Positions 1 through 31,219 of a stretch of DNA of 64,000 nucleotides are shown piece by piece. This DNA comes from Orbicella franksi (taxonomy: Eukaryota). The stretch's first letter is position 1; each line of letters opens with the position of its first letter. The notes beneath the pieces are model-generated. The model ran no database searches, was not told where the DNA came from, and worked only from the letters and a program-made list of their open reading frames with translations. Both the position numbers and the translations under genes were made by a program. The stretch spans positions 3,968,001 through 4,032,000 of the forward strand of contig OZ116708.1 of the NCBI GenBank assembly GCA_964199315.1. The letters are read 5' to 3'.

Positions 1-50
1 ACAGCAATGCCTTGTTCTGTGTAAGCAGAGATGTCACTTGGTCGATCCAT
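1..50 (-). CDS. 5' end of a BH3-only-like microprotein gene (copy A), truncated by the window edge
   Basis: ATG at 50 (-) gives MDRPSDISAYTEQGIA, matching MNHPSDLSARTERGFT of the 3012 ORF. Acceptor TTTACAG at 102-108 and the UTR (ACCATAAGGG...AATAATTTGAGCAAATC-ATG) match the + copy. A non-coding first exon ends at a GTAAG donor at 461/462; TATAAAAG lies at 575-582. The BH3 motif itself is outside the window. Confidence 0.75.
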   Translation of the reverse strand, partial: MDRPSDISAYTEQGIA

Positions 51-559
51 GATTTGCTCAAATTATTGCCAGTGACAATTTGCCCTTATGGTAAGTAGTT
101 CCTGTAAACACGAATCGTAAAATCATTTCATGTTTAAATATTGGTCTTAATGTTGGGAGTAAATTAATATCACAGAAATGTGACTTCAGCCCTTAAGGCA
201 TGCTTAACCCGTTAGTTTGTATCATTACGTTGTCCCATTGCAATATTGCTGTTGGTGCGATTCGTCCAATGTACTTAGCGACCTCACTAATGAAAGCAAA
301 ACGTGCTAGGAACGAGGAACGAAAAAATGGGATTCAATTGTGCTTGCAAAACAAAAACAACAAATATGTTTGCTCAAAATTCCGTAGAAAACGTTGAAAA
401 ATCGATGGCACATGAAAAACCAAAATATTCTAGAAACATTGACCTCTGGAAACAAACTTACCCAGAGTTCTGTATCCTTCTCACTTCTCAGCTTGACTTT
501 TTGCTGAAGTTCGACTCTCTTGTTCCACACGGGAGCTGGTAAGAGCTAATATGAACTAA

Positions 560-720
560 CCATGGCATGAAGCCCTTTTATAGGCCGAACCATCGTCCAA
601 AAATCACGAATCACGAAACAAATAACACGAAATATCACGTAACTCCATACCGTGTTTGTAAATCTTAACAACAATACCTCAGAGAGAGCCGGAGGGCACA
701 ACATCACGAGAACGGATTTC
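560..720 (-). promoter_or_regulatory. Promoter module of copy A (TATA box plus clustered CACGA motifs)
   Basis: Aligns in reverse complement with 2430-2590, e.g. TACAAACACG...CGTGATATTT..TGTTATTTGTTTCGTG.TTCGTGATTTTTGGA...ATAAAAGGG. Confidence 0.65.
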
Positions 721-989
721 AATAAAAACAAGCTCACATTATTTCACCAAGACTGAATTGTTTTAACTTCATGATTTTTCTATGTTTAAATCTTGCTTAA
801 GGCATATGTTATAGTAAACATAAGGGTTTATTTGCGATATCGTGTTGTGTACCGTGGTCTTGAAATCACATGAGGAGGATCACGTTCACTTATTCTCAAA
901 AACAAGTGAGTTAAATACTAGTTATTACTCACGATATATTATTTATGTAAATGTGTATGAGAAATGTTATGATTATCAATCTGAGGACT

Positions 990-1770: not shown

Positions 1771-2429
1771 TTCCATATACAAAACTTTCTTTTTGTTGTA
1801 CTGATATCTTTGCTCTGTTAAGAAACTAGCCCGTGTATGCAATGGCTAATTGAAATAATGCTAGAAAATGAGGTCGATCGGGCAGGCAACCTATATCACA
1901 GTATTTATCATGTATAATTTTCATTATTATCTGTCATTAATCAGCGATTTGATGAAACTTGAATTGATATTTCGTTTATTCTGTCAAGCGAATCTATAAA
2001 AGGTCTAGAACTCTTATACACACACGGCTAACATTGCTAATAACTATGATTAGTTTTGTAATAAATAAAATGAAAAATCGGCAGAATACTTTTCTATGTA
2101 AATATACTTCGTGAGAACGGAAACGATCCTTTCAGGTTTGTCCTGAAATGAACTGAACTCTTTCTTAGCTATTCTTGCAGTCATCAGAATAATAATCATA
2201 ATATTTGTCAAAAACATTTGCATGAAAAAGATAACGTGAGTAAAAACCATTATCTATGTCGCTTTGATTGTTTTTAAGGTGTGCGTCCTTACTAACCTCA
2301 TGAAAACAGCAGATAACTTAAAGATCACAGAGCGAGCTTTCACCTTTACTATGAGAGGTTCGTAGTATCATGTGAACAAATACAGTTCAAATGGTTGAAA
2401 TCTATGCACTAATAGTATAATCTGAACTT

Positions 2430-2590
2430 TTTTTGGCTAAAATTTTGTCTCGTGATGTTGTTCCAAAAAGCTCTATCGTGAAGTATTGTTGCTAAGGGTT
2501 ACAAACACGATTTTGTGTTGCGTGATATTTGATGTTATTTGTTTCGTGTTTCGTGATTTTTGGAGGTTGCCGTGGGCAATAAAAGGGTCC
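2430..2590 (+). promoter_or_regulatory. Promoter module of copy B
   Basis: Inverted homolog of 560-720. AATAAAAG at 2578-2585 precedes a non-coding exon ending at a GTAAGT donor (2675/2676); intron 2676-2967 ends in TTTTCACAG. Confidence 0.65.
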
Positions 2591-3011
2591 CACACCTTGA
2601 TGAATTCATAACTACCAGCTTCGGTGAGGAGAGGAACACTGAAACATTGATCCCTTCGAAATCATTCTTGGCTAGGTAAGTTGGATTTTTAGAGGTCATT
2701 TTAACAAAATATTCTGGCAATTTGCATCAAAATGAAACTGCATAAGAGAAAGATTTGTCTCGTTGAAGGATTTTTGCTTTGCCAGCCCGATCATCCCTAT
2801 TTCATTCCTTACTCAGATTTTTCTTCAAACATTACGTTTTGTAACACCGACTCCCAACTTCATATCTTCAGAATCCCTTCATATCGACGTTGCGATAGAT
2901 CATGCTGGGTCAGCGAAAACAGCGGGGCATTTTACTGAATGTAATAATTTTATGCTTCTTTTCACAGGATCTGCAGACCATTAGGGGAATTTTTAATAAT
3001 CTGAGCAAATT

Positions 3012-3221
3012 ATGAATCACCCAAGTGACCTCTCTGCTCGCACAGAACGAGGCTTTACTAATAAAGAAAATGCAGAGGCAATTAAATTTGTTGCCGGAAA
3101 ACTGGCGCTCGTTGGCGACCAGCTGAACCAGTCATATGAAGAATCGCGTTGCAGCGAAGTCAGGTCATGTATAAAGCTGGAAAGTTGCTTAGACATTTTG
3201 CGTTTGGTGCTGAAGGCGTAA
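3012..3221 (+). CDS. BH3-only-like microprotein (copy B), 69 aa
   Basis: Residues 27-42 VAGKLALVGDQLNQSY fit the BH3 consensus h-s-x-x-L-x-x-h-G-D-x-h-N. Amphipathic C-terminal helix LESCLDILRLVLKA. Spliced 5' UTR, and a paralog with conserved N-terminus at 1-50. Confidence 0.8.
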   Translation: MNHPSDLSARTERGFTNKENAEAIKFVAGKLALVGDQLNQSYEESRCSEVRSCIKLESCLDILRLVLKA

Positions 3222-6003
3222 ACCAGAAAGTTTAAAATAAACAAGAGGGCGACTGGAAATGCTCGGAAGTGTGTTCTGAAAGCAGGAAACTTATTGAGGA
3301 TGCTTCAAAATGAGATTTGAATGAAATGTATGCTCTGTGGACAAAGTTCAGGAGTTTTATCTATGAAAGAACGAAAATATGAACTGATCGAACACTGAAT
3401 TAAAGTCAAATCTAGAAATCCGATAAAACTGTATTTTATTATAAACGTTTTGATAGACTGAAACGACTAGTTGATCGCTTTTCAGTGTAATTATATTTGC
3501 TTATGGCTTAAGATATAGTTTTTTAGTTTTAGAATCACTGCAATTTAATCTTTTACTTTCTAACCAAACGGCAAAAAGCTAGTTAGACTTTTTGCCCGAT
3601 TGTTAAGAAGGTTCTGTTGACAATATATATGAAGAGGGAAAATAAATCTACCGGTCTGATAACATCCGGTATCGACTGATACTTTGATGAAGCATTCCAC
3701 TTATTTACTTGTCGGTTAACATATGTTCAGTCCACAGATTGCCCAAAGTAGTAAAACAGTGTGGGGTGATAAACTTGCCAATGATATTTTGTATCCTTAC
3801 CATTGAGATCACATGAAGCCAAACAATTTCATGACCTGTAAAAAAAAATAAAAAAACATTCGTAACTAAAACAGAAGTGAAAAATTTGCATTTTGCTGTC
3901 CTGCATGCAGCTGAAAACGATTTCTTTTGAAAAGGTGGTAAGTGCCTAATATATCACAAAGGGACGTTAAAAAGAACGCGAGCCAATGAGGAATACTGCT
4001 TTTTAACTACTGTCGTAATTACTTCTCACAAAATATATCAAGCACGTCAGTATGTTTTTTATGGTCGGGAGACAGCGATTCATGCTAAAGGAAGGCCAGT
4101 GAAGAAAAATCCATTTCCCACTAGCTGACTTCCCTGATTTTAAGATTTTCAGAATATGTGGAAATCGATATGCAATGGAGAAAGTCTATGTTTACTGCGA
4201 CATTCAAGCTTTGTCACAAAATAACCATGTAGGCAATTAATTGCAAGTGATTGCCTCACGAATGAGATATTTTCTGAAATTTACGTTCAGAAGTGATACT
4301 TTGGTATGATTATGAATACATAAGCAGCTTTTTTAGCTTTGAGATCTAAGAGGAAAATGTCTGTACTCGTTCTTAACTTTTAATAGATTTACAGGCCAAT
4401 CTAGTCTGTCCCATCTCTTTATGTTTTCAGAAAAGATAATTGCTCTTTCTCGTTGGTACTGAATATAGCAAATAATTATTTTAGACTAGCGTCATATGTG
4501 CAAAAAACCGCTTCATATTATCCTAGAAATCGCACGAAACATATTTCAAACTGCAATGACCGATTTCGTTTACTGAGGCTTAACCGAATCACTAGTTAAT
4601 CGCGCGAGATTGAGAAAGCCAACTTAACTTACCTTCAAACGGAATAAGTTTGTAATCTTTTAAATTCATAAATCGTGTTCCTATTTATAAGGAAATACAT
4701 TTGGAAATGGAAAATTGTAAGGATGTATTTTGTCTTTTAATTTCACAAAACAATACCAACAACATTAGTGGATTTAAAAATTGCCATGACGACCTGAGGA
4801 ATTTCGCCCTTTACGTCTTTCGTCACTAAGAGCTAAGAAAAATAAAAACAAAAAAATCAAGCTTTATTTGAAAAGATTTCAAGCTGGTCTTCGCTGTGGT
4901 TTTATCTTTGATTTGTGGTAAAATTGTATCTCATTTATCTTTTGTGGAAATAAGTGTGATTTTGATTTTAAACCTCTCCACTGGCAAATCGTGATAGAGG
5001 CACATTATTCCAATCATAAGGAGGTTGAAACATCTGAAACAAGTAACGTAGTCAACACCACGTATTTCATGAACGAGAAAAGAAAATCAGAGTATTTAAT
5101 TCAGGGAGGTACTAGAGTTATCCTGAATTCACTATCACATTAGTCACTTTTTCTCTGATAAAATGTAAATTTCTGTCAGTCGATTTTCAGCCCTCCATCT
5201 CTCACGATTGTAATTACTGCTTTTTGTGTTCCTTATATTTGTGTTGCTTATTTGATAACAAATGAGCTTCATCGACCAGCAAAATGTCATAGATCAGGCC
5301 GAGTTTATTTAACTGGGAAGATTGTTTTCTAATTTTTTCGATTTTCTAGCGCTCCCATGATTCACTATACATATTACCTCAGTTACAAGGATAAATCGTA
5401 AACGTCCCGGCCCAACGGACTTACGTCATCACCTAAAAAATTGCCTAATCCGATTACATCACCAGTAGCCTCCTACACAGAGGATTACACAGAGGCTCTT
5501 TAGGCTCGTCACGCAATCTTCCTCTCCCATAGGAGACTAGATTACCAGCCGCTGGTCGGGAAAGGAGCAGGCGCCCTTCCCCCGTGGATGGAACGTAGTC
5601 CAGAGGACTCGAGAGAGCCTTCTTCCCACCCCTCCTCAAAAATAATCCAATGACTGGATTAGGGTCAGGGTCACCGGCGCTATACTTAGCTAAAATAAGT
5701 CTACAAGACTGAAAGAATTTTTACAACGTTGTTAAACTTTGAATATATTTCTAAAAGTAATAATATCATTTTGAATACACAGTTAAAATTCTGATAATGA
5801 TCCCTGATGTCTTTGTTTTTAGCAATGTCATTACTTTATGAGACAAGCAAGCTCTAATGTCGTTCCAAATAAGTTCATTTTTGGAGAGACGGGGTGTATT
5901 ATCATATCAGGGTTTTTTTCGTCATGGATTTCAATGGTGAGGGGGAATATTTATAGTTCCGTGGGGACGGATTTGCACACAACAGGGTATTTAAAATAAG
6001 CTG

Positions 6004-7314
6004 TTATCCGTCTGAAAGTGATACGGCGAGGTCATATTGTGTTGTATCTGACCCATTCACCGGTCTATAATCGAGGAGTCTCATAAGAGATTGACAGCTT
6101 TCTTCTATAATATTTACAATACACGGGTCCATGTCAACCCTCCATTTGTCGACAACAACTTTTGAGTTTCTGTTCGTTGAGAAGTGATTTTTTTCTTCCT
6201 TCTCGTTGATTGCGCCCTCGCCAGTGTGAGCTTTTATCCAGTCGAGAGAACTCTGTTGCATATCAAGTCCTGTGATTTTATAAACTCTTCGTAGGATTTC
6301 TACGGGATTTCTAGCAAGGTCCTCGTATCGAAGCATATATGATCGGGGCTTCATCCAGCTCGGTCGGTTTTCAAATATCCTCACATTTTCCTCCACTTGT
6401 TGGCAAATAGTTTTGCTGTATTGTCTAATGACCGGTTGAGGCGAAGGAGTGTTTGTTTTGCGGGAAGCCCAAACAAAACCAACTTTCATATGAGAAAAGA
6501 CTAGCGAGCGAGGATCCCGAACCAGATAAATAATCCCGCAATCACTCGAATTACACAGCGGGAACAGCGAGTCGACCCGAAAGCTGGGGATTCTCGCAGT
6601 GAGAATTTTCAAGACTGTTTTACTGTAGTTTTTGCAGACAGATTCCATATTGTAGGGATTTAAGTGCACGCATTGCAATTTCTTCTTGCTTTGATTCTGG
6701 TTTTTCGCGGCGCATAATGGCGGAGACGAAAGCGCTTTGCTGGAGAGTCTCCTGAACTTCTCAATTTCTTGAATATATTGTGGAAATTCGAATTTACAGC
6801 GCAGCATTCCTTCAAGGAATTTCATCGGTCTTGGGTCGTTAGGTTGCTTTGGTGGAGCGATGCCATACAGAGGCTCAAACAAGTAAAACACATCTGGATG
6901 TTGATTGAAAGCATCCCCAAGAAACGATGATCCCGTGCGAGCTTGCCCTATGATGATAAGTCTTCGTACTGACGTTTTCATGTCCGCCAGCCGCGCAGTT
7001 TGGATGAGAGACGATCTTGACAGTTTCACGTTCTCTTGCCGAGCAGTTTGACCGGGAGACGATCTTACTGTTGCTTTCGCGAGAACGTTCCCTCGCAGAG
7101 CAGTATGCGAGATGATACCTCGATTTTCGGTGGCCCGAGTCACGACAAAACTGCTATCTTGCCTCAACCGTTCCGATTTGCGCGATCTCTCCTCGTCCGT
7201 GTGGATCCGTTCATGTGTCAAAGTCCACGTAAATAACGACAGAGAAGATGCAACAGCTAGGACACCGAGAAGGCGAATGAAAAATTTCTTTCTTATCAAA
7301 ATTGGCGCCATCAT
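6004..7314 (-). CDS. Carbohydrate sulfotransferase (CHST1/CHST3-like Golgi type II membrane protein), intronless, 436 aa
   Basis: N-terminal transmembrane segment; 5'-PSB motif IIIGQARTGSSFLGDAFNQHPDVFYLFEPLY; 3'-PB motif IIYLVRDPRSLVFS; LRYEDLARNP and KWR motifs. Confidence 0.93.
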   Translation of the reverse strand: MMAPILIRKKFFIRLLGVLAVASSLSLFTWTLTHERIHTDEERSRKSERLRQDSSFVVTRATENRGIISHTALRGNVLAKATVRSSPGQTARQENVKLSRSSLIQTARLADMKTSVRRLIIIGQARTGSSFLGDAFNQHPDVFYLFEPLYGIAPPKQPNDPRPMKFLEGMLRCKFEFPQYIQEIEKFRRLSSKALSSPPLCAAKNQNQSKKKLQCVHLNPYNMESVCKNYSKTVLKILTARIPSFRVDSLFPLCNSSDCGIIYLVRDPRSLVFSHMKVGFVWASRKTNTPSPQPVIRQYSKTICQQVEENVRIFENRPSWMKPRSYMLRYEDLARNPVEILRRVYKITGLDMQQSSLDWIKAHTGEGAINEKEEKNHFSTNRNSKVVVDKWRVDMDPCIVNIIEESCQSLMRLLDYRPVNGSDTTQYDLAVSLSDG

Positions 7315-7764
7315 GGTCTATGAACACTAGATACTTCCGATCAGTAATCACAGTTTTGTCAGTCATCTTGTGCACGCAACCGGCGAAATACCTGACAAGG
7401 ATTGCGGCGTGAACTGTAGGGGGGCTAAATACGCGCGATTTAGCTTAGTTATTCCGCGATTTGTGGCCAGCTCTGTGACACAAGTTTCGCATTCTTCTAA
7501 ACTTATTGCGTGATTTGCCGGCTTTTCGCAACAGTTTTGAAAGTCTTATAACGACTACTTGAAGCCTGCTTCGCAGACAGTACATACCGTAGCCCGGGGA
7601 GAGGCGGCTGAGACACAGGCTATACATGCCGCTGGTATACATTACAGGGTTAAATTTCCGCTAACAAAGACGTGATTGAACAGGTGTAGGTCCGCAATGG
7701 GTACTGACCTGGCTTTGCATGTTCGGGAATCAAGAGCTGCAGCCGAGGCCATAAACATGATCGC

Positions 7765-8080
7765 CAAATTCCGACTTTTCCTTGATAAAAATAAAATTTC
7801 CCTGACCAAAGAAATACAAATTGCCAGGTCTACATGTAGTAGCGGCTTCTTCCACTCCTTCATTAAGAGTGACAATTTTTCGACAAATTTTCCTTCTTTA
7901 TTGAGAAAAACTATCATTGAGATCAGTGATCCAATGTTTCTTGTGGCCTTCAATAATATTAAATCAGCCGTATTAAAAATATTTCAATTTTCCCTGACTT
8001 TCCTACAAAAGGTTTTTCCCTGACTCGAAATAAAATTTCTTGACTTTTCCCTGACCTTGAAGAATATTTTTTCCCTGTGG
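7765..8080 (-). repeat. Interspersed repeat fragment with recurring GTCAGGGAAA motifs
   Basis: Four TTTCCCTGAC copies on + at about 7797, 7989, 8016 and 8047; it accounts for most of the ORFs at 7642-8023. Confidence 0.55.
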
Positions 8081-9210
8081 CAACTCTGATAAGCTTGCAA
8101 AAGGCTCGAGCTGACCTTTACCACCCTTTCCTGTATCAGCGAAGCCCAAAACGTTTAAATTAAGGGAGGGGAAAGGCCAGCGCTAGAGCTTTTTTTGCTA
8201 AGAGAAGTAACCACCGTGAAAGAATTTGCGGAGCTTCATTCAATGAAACTTTGAAAAGGAAATTTTATTGCCTTGGTTTTGAAAAAAAAAAGATGTTACA
8301 GAAAAGATTTTCTCGTAAAATAAAACTTGCATGACTTTATAACTGAAAACTTTCAACAGTCGGGATACAAAAGCTGTTTACACAAATCTCCGTCAAGCTT
8401 TCGGAGGGTTTTCAATTACCGTTAACCAATCAGAAACAAGACCGAGTACTCATGAGTACTCCGAACATTCTCCCACGTTCTTTGCAATGGCTTTGCGTCG
8501 TCGTTGTAAATTCCAGACCCCTATTTAAATGATTCCGGAAACGTGCAGCAGTTATTGTTCGGGTCACTGTTTGAGTCATTTATTTAGTTCTTAGTGACCT
8601 AATAAAAAAGTTCGAACTACTGGGGACGATAAGCAAAAAAGCCTCCTTAAACCCTGACTGTTTACAGAAAGCATGGCAAAGAAAACTTGGAAAAATTGAA
8701 GCATTAAAAACTACAACGAAAATTAAAATCTGACGTGGATGGTCTTAACAAATAATCTCAGAAAAACAGATTATTCTTGAATTAGAAGAACTCGACAATT
8801 CTGGCTGACATACTGACTAAGATGCTCCAACAATGTTCAGTGTGTACACGATTCCACAACGAAATACAGTTCTCTTATATATAATATTTTGTCTGGGTAA
8901 ATTATCCGTACATAAACAAATAATGTTTGAATCTGCTGTTCTTTTCTCTTTACCCACATTTAACACGCGAGAAAGTCCGTCAGCGTCAGCTGGAAAATAC
9001 ACTGCCCATGTTTTATATCACGTCAGGAGACCGCAATCGCATGACCAGGACGAAAACTGCGGCTGGACAAGGATACAGGCATCTCACTTCATCTTTTCAT
9101 AACAATCATGTCACGTGTAACTCACGTACCACTCACGTGACAGCTCTTGTTGGATAACGGTCTTTCTTTCTCGTTTGACAGTTTGGAGTAGTTAGCAGAA
9201 GCGGGGAGTT

Positions 9211-17942
<8,732 letters not shown>

Positions 17943-28636: not shown

Positions 28637-31219
28637 TCACTTGTTTAAGGCCAGAAGAGTTAAGCCAGCGGCACAGATACTTCCCACTGTGAACAAACTT
28701 TTCCACATGGTTTGTGACTGCGAAGATTCTGAAAAGTGAGCAGTAAAGCCGTCCTGAAAAAAAAAAAAAAAAAACACAATAAATTCAATTTCCATGTAGA
28801 GCATCAATGACTTAGCACCATTCATATTTGCAGAAGGTGATAATTACAATCAACTTAAAGGGTGGATTGAAGAGAAAGCAAAAACATACTTCCCATTATA
28901 TTATAATCCACTTACTTCTCAATACACCACTATCAATATCTTAAAATTCAGCTTGATAGCGAGACCTAGAAGACACAAACAAAAGAAATGAATAAACATG
29001 GTCATTCAATTTCCTTTGTTTGTGTCCTCTAAGCCTCACTGCCAAGCTGAATTTTAATATATCAAAAACGGTCTATTTTATGTTGCATATCATTTTAAAA
29101 CATTGTAATAAAATAATTCCATACAGGATTATAAAAGGACACATCACATTTATGACAAATATGCTACAGAGTTGCTTAGGGTGTTTAACAAAATTCAGAG
29201 ACCCGAGGATACCACACTTTATGATTATTCATACCCTTCACAGGCAGCTGTACTAAGACTAATGTATTTGTCTGCAACCAAGAAATGAGTTGGTGCAGAT
29301 GAGTGACAGTGGCTTGACAAAAAGACAAATATTAGTCTTCTGTCTGAGGACATTCTTGCCAATAACATGTTCAGTTTTGGAGGAAGGAAGTTCATTTTCA
29401 ATTAGTTTAAAAGCGACTGCGGTTCAAGATAAATGCAATTAAGACATGTATCACAACATACGATATAGTTTAAAAATTGGCAATATGGGGCATTCCACTT
29501 TTATTCTGCACCCCTCTTTACATGGCAAACTCCAGCACAGTGCCTGTTGGAATATTGTTTTTTAAAGCAGCTGAAAAAATTTTGAAACTCTTGGAAGCAA
29601 ACTTCAAAGGTGCAGAAAATAAAAAAAGATAGGGTTTTGGAATCTGCCCTTCATTGCAGGGATGCAGATAAAAAATGGAGTGTTCCAATATATGGTTAAG
29701 CAGCATAGACACCAGTATCGTAAATTTTCCCAACTTTAAACAGGGCTACACAAAGAATTCCTTCACATAAAGTGTTGCTCTTTGGAAATTGAATTTTTTG
29801 TTTAGGATTTTCTCACTGTAAAGCACTTAGGACAGCAATGTATAAGCGCTGCATAAAAGTTTTTACTATTGTTACTGGTATTATTAAAGTTCTTTATTAT
29901 TGTCATTTTGTGATTTTACTAGAGAGAAACTTGCAACACTGAAATATAAAACAGACAAAACTCTCACTAAGTGGTACAAGACATTTAAATTTTTTTAACT
30001 TGAATTTACCGGAAGCCGTGTTCTGTCTTACTGGGTAGAGCGTATAATTTTTTAGTTTGAATTACGTAACTACGACCAGTACAAAATCCACCAAAGGAGG
30101 TACTTGAATGTTAGAGGGTGATCAAAAATGCATGAATGGAAATTAACTCCCCCGGGGCAATATACTAATACGAACATTTGTCAAACGGAAATACTTTTCA
30201 CGTTTTCTTCGCGCGAATTTTCTCTATTGAATCGAAGATCGAGAAAAAGCTGAAATTCTTCTGTTCAAATTTGTTAATGAAGTTATTCACTTGTCAACAG
30301 AAACAACCAGACTATTTATGCAGTGAAAGTTGAGGAAAACAGCAAGCAGAAGAGGTGCCCCGCTGATGCAAGAAATTTTCATTTTACATGTTTACATTAT
30401 CTATGGCCCCAGAATTTGTCTCAAGATTGAAAAATTCTTCTTGAATTTGCATCAAAATAACATACCTAGGTGTTTCGAGACAAAAACGTAAACGAAATGT
30501 CGACAAGATAAATGAATGTCTGACTCATAACTAATGTAAATACAGACTGAAATTTGCATTCAGTAAATTACTACAGCACGTACGTAAGCTCATGACAGCT
30601 GGTAGGCTAAAGAGAAAAATAACAAAAAATTTTTAAAATAATGTAAAATAAATAAAAAAACCACAGCGAATTTTTTCAAAAACTCAGGATTACAACTCAC
30701 CCATCCTCCATTTTCTCTGATCCACGTTAATAAGTTATCGGCTATAAATGAGGCAATCCATTCCACGATGTGTTGAGCCATTTCTGGTCGTTGTGTTTCC
30801 ACGAAATGATGAGCCACTACGCCTCCGAACGTGAACAACGCCACTATTCTGCCCCAGTTTGTTCCTGCTTGAAAAATCTCTTGCGCCACACCGACAAACG
30901 TAGGATAAGCTGTAACTGGTGTAATTCCTAACGTTGTGCACAATGATTCGAACAAATCAGGGTGTTCTGCCTCCATAAGAGTTGCCAGTTTTCGTAGAGT
31001 ACTCGCTGATGGGTTTGTTGGCGTCTGAGGAATAAGAAACTGTCGAGGTAAACCTTTAAGTCTGCTCTGTTCAAATTTGCTCCTTAGCCGGTAAGAAATA
31101 TAGTCAAGTGTGAGGGAAACTCCTTCGTCGATGATTTTCTTATCGTACCTTGACATTTCAGAGGTATTGAGGGTAGGAGAAAGGTCCTCGTTGTTCAGCG
31201 CAGCTGTCGCTCCGGCCAT
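28637..31219 (-). CDS. Pro-survival Bcl-2 family protein (Bcl-xL/Bcl-w type), 211 aa, two coding exons (30701-31219 and 28637-28753)
   Basis: BH4 LTLDYISYRL; LGITPVTAYPTF..VAQEIFQAGTNWGRIVALFTFGG (BH1); WIRENGGW|DGF with the intron at the conserved BH2 position (GTGAGT...TTTTCAG); C-terminal anchor WKSLFTVGSICAAGLTLLALNK. 5' UTR intron at about 31338-31482. Confidence 0.93.

Follow-up and report, generated by a model that had tools for sequence, protein, structure and literature searches.

At one edge of a 64,000-nucleotide stretch of the genome of the coral Orbicella franksi (contig OZ116708.1; here called the window, which is G000:C11:3968001-4032000 of the 497-Mb assembly that was searched) lies a gene that we call copy A. 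We consider copy A likely to be a functional two-exon microgene for a BH3-only protein of 76 residues, which would work by the mechanism proposed below. Its most likely role in stony corals is that of a trigger, so far uncharacterised, of mitochondrial cell death. Copy A is paired head to head with a second gene of the same kind, copy B, whose open reading frame (ORF) occupies positions 3012–3221 of the window. An intact and selected reading frame, a BH3 signature, the paralogy with copy B, conservation across coral species and presence in RNA libraries carry this view; a predicted complex with a Bcl-2-fold protein is in line with it.

The reading frame and its product

Only the first 50 nucleotides of the copy-A coding sequence fall inside the window, where the minus strand from position 50 to position 1 translates as MDRPSDISAYTEQGIA. 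An earlier note, made from the window alone, had read this segment as the start of a paralog of the ORF at 3012 and had predicted a BH3 motif (L-x-x-h-G-D) about 30 codons from the ATG. After addition of the flanking genome, an early stop was looked for and none was found: the complete ORF encodes 76 amino acids, is placed by tblastn at G000:C11:3967823-3968050 (window −177 to 50), and runs beyond the window to G000:C11:3967823, followed by a stop codon at 3967820-3967822. The motif itself is present at about 35 codons, as L35-A-I-I-G39-D40, and forms part of the BH3 core L35-A-I-I-G39-D40-E-L42 (LAIIGDEL, residues 35–42). The interior of the protein contains TEVIQTVANRLAIIGDELSLSYQ, and its C-terminus ends in LEGCLDILLSVLKA. 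The start codon has a good context, with A at −3 and G at +4, and the exon-2 leader contains no upstream ATG, while an in-frame TAA stands 15 nt 5′ of the start codon. Copy A is indeed missing from the ORF list of the window, as that note had remarked, because ORFs leaving the window are unlisted. The elements of the two genes are the following, a slash in a sequence marking the exon–intron boundary.

1 to 50, minus strand: codons 1–16 and part of 17 of copy A (50 nt of coding sequence), with the ATG at 50–48
51 to 101, minus strand: 5′ untranslated region (UTR) of copy A within putative exon 2; acceptor YAG/GAAC at 102/101, kept in seven species
102 to 461, minus strand: putative intron of copy A, with GT at 461–460 and AG at 103–102
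462 to 550, minus strand: putative non-coding exon 1 of copy A, its 3′ end at 462 given by the conserved donor
576 to 582, minus strand: TATA box of copy A (TATAAAA), kept in 7/7 aligned species and in copy B
590 to 725, minus strand: promoter module of copy A, about 140 bp with reiterated T(C/T)TCGTG(A/T)T motifs, conserved across species
2415 to 2590, plus strand: mirror promoter module of copy B with its TATA box (2578–2584), from the A/B alignment
2600 to 2675, plus strand: putative non-coding exon 1 of copy B, donor at 2675/2676, with a presumed 5′ end
2968 to 3221, plus strand: start of copy-B exon 2 and its coding sequence for 69 amino acids (3012–3221), BH3 core LALVGDQL

The 5′ end of copy-A exon 1 would lie near 550, about 30 nt downstream of the TATA box.

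A BH3 signature outside the known families

A BH3 is defined by four hydrophobic positions h1–h4 at i, i+4, i+7 and i+11, with one small residue ahead of h2 and another behind h3, and by an invariant aspartate at h3+2. Copy A shows this pattern with V31, A32, L35, I38, G39, D40 and L42. The Bcl-2 fold, in turn, was searched for in copy A with PF00452, which gave no match at E-values up to 10, and copy A is not among the genome's 13 PF00452 loci. Motifs of the BH1, BH2 and BH4 type are likewise absent from its 76 residues. Judged by its sequence, copy A would be classed as a BH3-only protein that stands outside the BID, BIM and Noxa families of Pfam.

Among 27 family members, the only recurrent Pfam matches were BID (18/27) and Bclx_interact, the BH3 of BIM (7/27), whereas BIK matched a single member (1/27); the best E-values within the family were 0.0021 for BID and 0.0015 for Bclx_interact (PF08945). 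For copy A itself, BID (PF06393) was matched with an E-value of 0.002 at model positions 72–100, i.e. its BH3, and copy B reached 12.4 bits against the same model. Since the scores lie below the gathering cut-off, we do not assign copy A to the BID or BIM homologs. Noxa/PMAIP1 (PF15150) matched neither A nor B at E-values up to 10, nor any of the 27 members at E-values up to 1. Furthermore, the family profile was compared with solved structures, which comprise 177,635 distinct sequences. Of its 60 best matches, all at marginal E-values, 57 were BH3 segments of BAK, BID, BIM, BAX or BIK or engineered mimics of them, the remaining three being haemagglutinin HA2. The closest solved match was BAK (QVGRQLAIIGDDINRRYD versus sVAnkLaiIGDeLsqsYe).

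A coral-wide family under purifying selection

A word-seeded search retrieved 41 proteins, nearly all of 76–77 amino acids and 73–87% identical to A. An exhaustive profile search of 1.84 billion representatives yielded 33 matches with a common layout, nearly all of 69–99 amino acids; the handful above this length look like wrongly called ORFs. A second profile run returned 74 family proteins. The family thus delineated has a size of about 69–85 amino acids and more than 70 relatives in other coral-derived data, the only named one being a ‘hypothetical protein’ of Oculina patagonica. In its members, a variable N-terminus precedes the segment (E/D)xIxxVAxxLxxIGDxLxxSY, which a variable linker joins to a hydrophobic tail that closes with LKA or LKASS. 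Copy A shares all that defines the A/B family, namely the length of 69–85 amino acids, the BH3 pattern, a tail of the CLDILxxxLKA type and the promoter module with TCGTG repeats.

Longer isoforms were considered and rejected. P0101 (137 amino acids, 100% identical; L017:602-1015) and P0112 (141 amino acids, 79% identical to A) stem from a metagenome gene caller that read through the TGA stop; P0042, P0029 and P0037 are genomic DNA read into the 5′UTR or intron, and P0016 (133 amino acids) is a fusion of two tandem copies. In some relatives (L051:723-933; P0041) the C-terminus is frameshifted and reads GKLLGHFAFGAEG instead of SCLDILRLVLKA; these are either decaying copies or assembly errors.

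Residues V31, L35 and G39 are invariant across 27 diverse members, at least 90% of which also keep A32, D40 and L42; I28, A36 and Y46 are additionally invariant inside the A and B clades. The conserved positions recur every three to four residues and correspond to the hydrophobic face of a BH3 helix plus the Gly-Asp pair. At the DNA level, contigs of other species are collinear with the entire A/B locus at about 76–79% identity. Within locus A, cross-species identity amounts to 86.5% for the coding sequence, 90.7% for the BH3 codons and 83–87% for the promoter module, and is lowest, at 76%, in the intron; a relative with 96% identity (L031) carries a 172-nt indel within the proposed intron. 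The TATA box and the splice-site dinucleotides, GT at the donor and AG at the acceptor, occur in 7/7 aligned species.

The ratio of nonsynonymous to synonymous substitution rates (dN/dS) is 0.48 over eight phylogenetically independent ortholog pairs (Fisher p 1.4e-5). Among the segments, the ratio is lowest in the C-terminal tail (0.31), followed by the BH3 segment (0.45) and the remainder (0.66). Together with the conservation of the segments, this ratio shows that the copy-A ORF is under purifying selection, which is strongest on the BH3 and the tail. The earlier note had argued for real and selected ORFs from conservation of a 16-residue N-terminus. Selection is borne out, but the N-terminus does not serve as evidence for it, being among the less conserved parts; this part of copy A is poorly conserved and probably disordered.

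Predicted fold and complex

The AlphaFold2 (AF2) model of the copy-A monomer is helical, with the highest confidence at residues 21–45 (block means 82–92) and again in the tail, and with low confidence in the N-terminus. As a test receptor for complex prediction, the following neighbouring gene was used, which lies outside the A/B unit.

30590 to 31219, minus strand: main exon of a Bcl-2-fold gene (BH4-BH3-BH1-BH2 up to ...ENGGW)

The complex of copy A with residues 20–175 of this exon, 28 kb away, was predicted with a score of 0.80, while the best of three controls scored 0.00. For comparison, the mark of 0.80 is reached by 51 of 78 solved complexes and by 2 of 108 mismatched pairs. The runs share at least 96% of contacts, and the partner has a predicted local distance difference test (pLDDT) value of at least 57. 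On the side of A, the predicted interface comprises residues 27–29, 31–36, 38–40, 42–43 and 46, i.e. the conserved positions; on the side of the receptor, it comprises residues 78–97, 107–118 and 121–131, i.e. the groove helices and BH1. In the model, G39 and D40 adjoin G123 and R124 of the BH1 ‘NWGR’ motif, an arrangement that gives the canonical BH3 Asp-Arg pair.

The predicted complex supports a resemblance of A to a BH3 ligand, a statement that leaves aside its preference among the 13 receptors. Two of the genome's Bcl-2-fold loci are obvious candidate targets of A and B: L021 (G000:C2:28270221-28270520), with the BH3 RRLGEIGDEIDAKY, looks Bak-like by its sequence, and L024 (G000:C6:1919497-1919781), with the BH3 VAHVIRDIGDRLSND, looks Bax-like.

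Several points speak against copy A being a BH3-only protein. All matches to BH3 families are below curated or conventional thresholds (Pfam BID scores 18.1 bits on copy A versus a gathering cut-off of 25; the best PDB E-value is 0.02), and short linear motifs such as a BH3 can evolve convergently. A dN/dS of about 0.5 indicates moderate constraint only, and for the BH3 segment on its own the test does not reach significance (p 0.063), in part owing to a dS that is low there too. Besides, the C-terminal tail has neither the length nor the hydrophobicity of a classical transmembrane anchor, and the score of the predicted complex may reflect memory, because many BH3:Bcl-2 complexes have been solved. 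One could read copy A as a conserved small helical protein that binds something other than Bcl-2 proteins and in which VAxxLxxIGDxL is a convergent BH3-like motif; homo-oligomerisation, a partnership in autophagy or mitochondrial dynamics, or membrane insertion with the help of the tail would be conceivable roles. In addition to the sub-threshold matches, such a reading could invoke that the tail, which is outside the BH3 definition, is constrained as strongly as the BH3, and that the AF2 monomer forms one long helix, so that copy A is not obviously a disordered BH3-only protein. Yet the conserved positions follow the BH3 heptad pattern including the Gly-Asp pair, the best of the solved sequences are almost purely BH3 segments, and in the predicted complex the conserved residues occupy the canonical groove and form the Asp-Arg pair, while the three controls scored 0.00. 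We thus regard convergence as an unlikely explanation.

A mirrored gene pair from an old duplication

The proteins A and B are 52% identical over their full length, and B, whose ORF begins with MNHPSDLSARTERGFT, is linked to A with an E-value of 6.8e-12 in a six-frame search of the whole genome. Further copies were found in this genome neither by protein searches (E up to 10) nor with the family profile (E up to 1), so that A and B are the sole two family loci in these searches. In a maximum-likelihood tree, A-type and B-type sequences form separate clades (support 99/94 and 99/97, respectively), each containing several species; the deeper branching order is unsettled because the alignment has few columns.

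The mirror symmetry that the earlier note had described for the promoter, the non-coding first exon and the acceptor with UTR is recovered by pairwise alignment. When the copy-A region is compared with the reverse complement of the copy-B region, positions 550–711 match 2448–2610, i.e. the promoter, in inverted orientation (77% identity, E 1.7e-26). The conserved islands are the promoter with the TATA box, the end of exon 1 with the donor, and the acceptor with the 5′UTR, whereas the introns of A and B align poorly with each other. The donors read CTGG/GTAAGT at 462/461 in A versus CTAG/GTAAGT at 2675/2676 in B, and the acceptors TTTACAG/GAAC at 102/101 versus TTCACAG/GATC at 2967/2968. The TATA boxes, at 582–576 on the minus strand for A and at 2578–2584 for B, are 2.0 kb apart and the genes are divergent, in agreement with the roughly 2 kb given before. 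The alignments and the tree show that copy A is a true inverted paralog of the gene at 3012.

The same head-to-head pair occurs in another coral (L015), where A is 87% and B 80% identical to the genes described here and about 2.9 kb separate the start codons. Between A and B, dS is about 0.54–0.69; between the orthologs of this coral and the L015 coral, it is about 0.21–0.24. The paralog dS is well above the ortholog dS, and the inversion-duplication is therefore old. As read from these comparisons, A and B go back to an old local duplication with inversion, in which the entire promoter was copied as well. Oculina patagonica (L016) has three A-like copies within 10 kb, at 3227-3460 on the minus strand and at 8001-8234 and 12978-13211 on the plus strand, and in another species a single 1.1-Mb contig bears four family members. 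Expansion of the family thus proceeds by local, independent duplication, with two copies here, three in Oculina and four in that other species.

The Oculina gene model ACROYT_G034173 (133 amino acids) joins the two tandem copies and contains two BH3 motifs; this fusion probably stems from faulty annotation. A sulfotransferase gene (Pfam Sulfotransfer_1) is located near the BH3-only cluster in two other corals (L015:1-424 and L016:18017-19357), which suggests conserved synteny. Further along the window, the GC content rises at 6000–8000.

Transcription and splicing

The 542-nt exon-2 stretch of A is present in 14 RNA runs, which come from several studies and include random-primed, polyA and single-cell libraries, with shares of 0.06–0.70; the share of the whole 5.8-kb locus in the same libraries is 0.09–0.26, below that of exon 2. 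In the polyA library X3, the coding sequence of A is covered, while its intron, exon 1 and the intergenic DNA are uncovered; in the same library, exon 2 of B is covered from its acceptor onward at a depth of 3–8 times that of the B intron. Exon 2 of A is hence likely transcribed. For the two-exon architecture, with a splice that would join 462 to 101, we rely on the TATA box, GT and AG, because these are kept in seven species as well as between the paralogs. A contig from polyA RNA sequencing begins exactly at 2968 (L006:3968), the first base of B exon 2, where it is preceded by a 15-letter adapter and not by exon 1; this may be coincidence, or there may be a 5′ end at this position.

The RNA data also contain counter-evidence to an expressed, spliced gene. 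Spliced reads or contigs of the locus were absent, and the contig-based runs end inside exon 2. Two polyA runs searched at the level of raw reads (X22 and X24) gave zero reads at the locus and so no splice test. The random-primed library X1 covers the B intron as well; therefore, carry-over of DNA or pre-mRNA is possible for part of the RNA evidence. A degenerate 25-nt pattern spanning the junction of exons 1 and 2 had no match in metagenome contigs, which are genomic contigs only, and about 30 database contigs (L007-L017, L031-L052) are all collinear with the unspliced genome, none being a spliced mRNA.

With zero reads in the raw-read runs, an unobserved splice and frameshifted family copies elsewhere, copy A could be taken for a decaying or silent duplicate, with only B, or neither gene, being functional. 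We find this very improbable. The ORF of A is intact at 76 amino acids in dozens of species and the A clade is better conserved than the B clade; moreover, dN/dS is below 1, promoter, TATA box and splice sites are kept, and exon 2 is found in the 14 RNA runs.

Relation to known BH3 proteins

Experimental proof of cnidarian BH3-only proteins comes from Hydra only, and HyBH3-only-2 is the sole one with measured binding (PMC7489894). This protein, with the core LRAIGDDI, binds in the groove of the pro-survival HyBcl-2-4 at 149 nM and is pro-apoptotic when expressed (PMC7489894). A review from 2022 gives hypothesised cnidarian BH3-only candidates only (PMC8998228), the main study of the coral Bcl-2 repertoire calls the characterisation of BH3-only members ‘of particular importance’ but ‘challenging’ (PMC4715348), and the BH3 string of the present family is absent from the papers in the searchable literature. 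Like copy A, HyBH3-only-2 is small, has the BH3 as its sole recognisable feature and follows h-x-x-IGD-(D/E)-h (ACLRAIGDDIQ versus NRLAIIGDELS). Outside the motif, sequence similarity between the two was undetected, and the family profile retrieved no recognised Hydra protein among matches that come without taxonomy. Unlike HyBH3-only-2, the coral proteins carry a hydrophobic tail that is conserved at the C-terminus, and their genes would comprise two exons, the first of them non-coding.

Mammalian Noxa (PMAIP1) is a microprotein of 54–103 amino acids with one BH3 helix and a short hydrophobic C-terminal targeting segment, and is controlled mainly by transcription from an inducible promoter. 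The layout of copy A is alike, but its BH3 is BAK/BID-like and not Noxa-like; homology is unlikely and the resemblance architectural. EGL-1 of C. elegans, a BH3-only trigger of 91 amino acids, is likewise under chiefly transcriptional control, by a complex cis-regulatory region; its sequence is unrelated to copy A, and the nematode pathway lacks Bak/Bax-type effectors. BID and BIM are matched by the family members in their BH3 part only, while the helical bundle of BID with its caspase-cleavage loop and the rest of BIM are absent.

The BH3 of BAK, the best solved match, agrees with that of the coral family (VGRQLAIIGDDINRRYD versus VANRLAIIGDELSLSYQ), including a Tyr four residues after h4, and the coral Bak-like BH3 RRLGEIGDEIDAKY (G000:C2:28270221) has the same frame. 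BAK itself is a multi-domain effector of Bcl-2 fold with BH1, BH2 and a transmembrane anchor, all three of which copy A lacks. Copy A might be thought of as a BH3 decoy or modulator and not as a death trigger, for instance as a fragment derived from the BH3 of Bak that buffers apoptosis by filling the grooves of pro-survival or effector proteins, or that is itself sequestered. Its BH3 being nearest to BAK (LAIIGDDINRRY versus LAIIGDELSLSY) and its likeness to L021, which is compatible with an origin from a Bak BH3 exon, would fit such a role. The similarity to Bak is confined to about 14 residues, though, and Noxa and EGL-1, which are of similar size, are pro-death. The same holds for HyBH3-only-2 (PMC7489894). 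Although the present data do not separate sensitiser, activator and decoy, we consider a decoy function quite improbable and retain the trigger as the preferred reading.

A shared promoter module

The promoter module and TATA region (555–730 on the minus strand; 2415–2600 on the plus strand) consists of the five blocks TCTCGTGATGTTGT, TCGTGAGGTATTGTTGCTAAG, TACAAACACG, GTTRCGTGATATTTCGTGTTATT and TTCGTGTTTCGTGATTTTTGG, followed by the TATA box. Conservation between A and B is higher in the module than in the coding sequence, and even a relative whose protein shares only 46% identity has a recognisable module upstream (L050:2270-2480). For the motif TYTCGTGWT, the window contains 12 sites where 2.67 would be expected, and 6 of these 12 are in the two promoters. 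A and B would share a common divergent control region of about 2 kb with the same cis-module; therefore, they are probably switched on by the same transcription factor. Our analysis of the module points to a control of A and B that is mainly transcriptional and exerted via one factor, as in Noxa, Puma and EGL-1.

For the TCGTG repeats, the interferon-stimulated response element and interferon regulatory factor site (ISRE/IRF), the hypoxia response element (HRE; RCGTG), the cAMP and unfolded protein response elements (CRE/UPRE) and FoxO sites were considered and rejected, since none of them agrees well with the spacing or core. In the intergenic part of the window at 720–1000, upstream of the A module, cross-species identity is about 86% versus 76% in the A intron, which suggests further regulatory sequence of the divergent control region.

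Proposed mechanism and significance

According to our proposal, transcription from the TATA promoter would give a spliced mRNA of about 0.8 kb and a product of 76 amino acids. Residues 24–47 or so would form an amphipathic BH3 helix with the hydrophobic residues V31, L35, I38 and L42, plus A32, G39 and D40. This helix would enter the hydrophobic groove of Bcl-2-fold proteins, where D40 may pair with the Arg of the BH1 ‘NWGR’ motif. Occupancy of the groove would then either neutralise pro-survival members or activate Bak/Bax, leading to mitochondrial permeabilisation and apoptosis. The hydrophobic tail CLDILLSVLKA probably helps the protein to reach the outer membrane, in a Noxa-like manner.

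The BH3-only class as such is already known; what is new is a second, better-conserved member of a coral-wide microprotein family. Genes this small escape standard gene callers and are missed at window edges; the only named database entry merges two copies into one ‘hypothetical protein’. As reagents for work on how corals initiate mitochondrial death, the analysis offers a BH3 peptide of 27 residues, a set of 13 candidate receptors and the conserved promoter module.

Apoptosis is central to coral bleaching and disease, and the BH3-only triggers of corals are essentially uncatalogued. We tentatively suggest, as a possible but doubtful extension, that A and B are a transcriptionally induced BH3-only sentinel of stony corals, i.e. 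a pair derived from the BH3 of Bak whose shared control region answers to one stress-responsive factor. If this were true, heat, oxidative or symbiont stress would be linked directly to mitochondrial apoptosis in bleaching, and the promoter module would offer a handle for finding the controlling factor.

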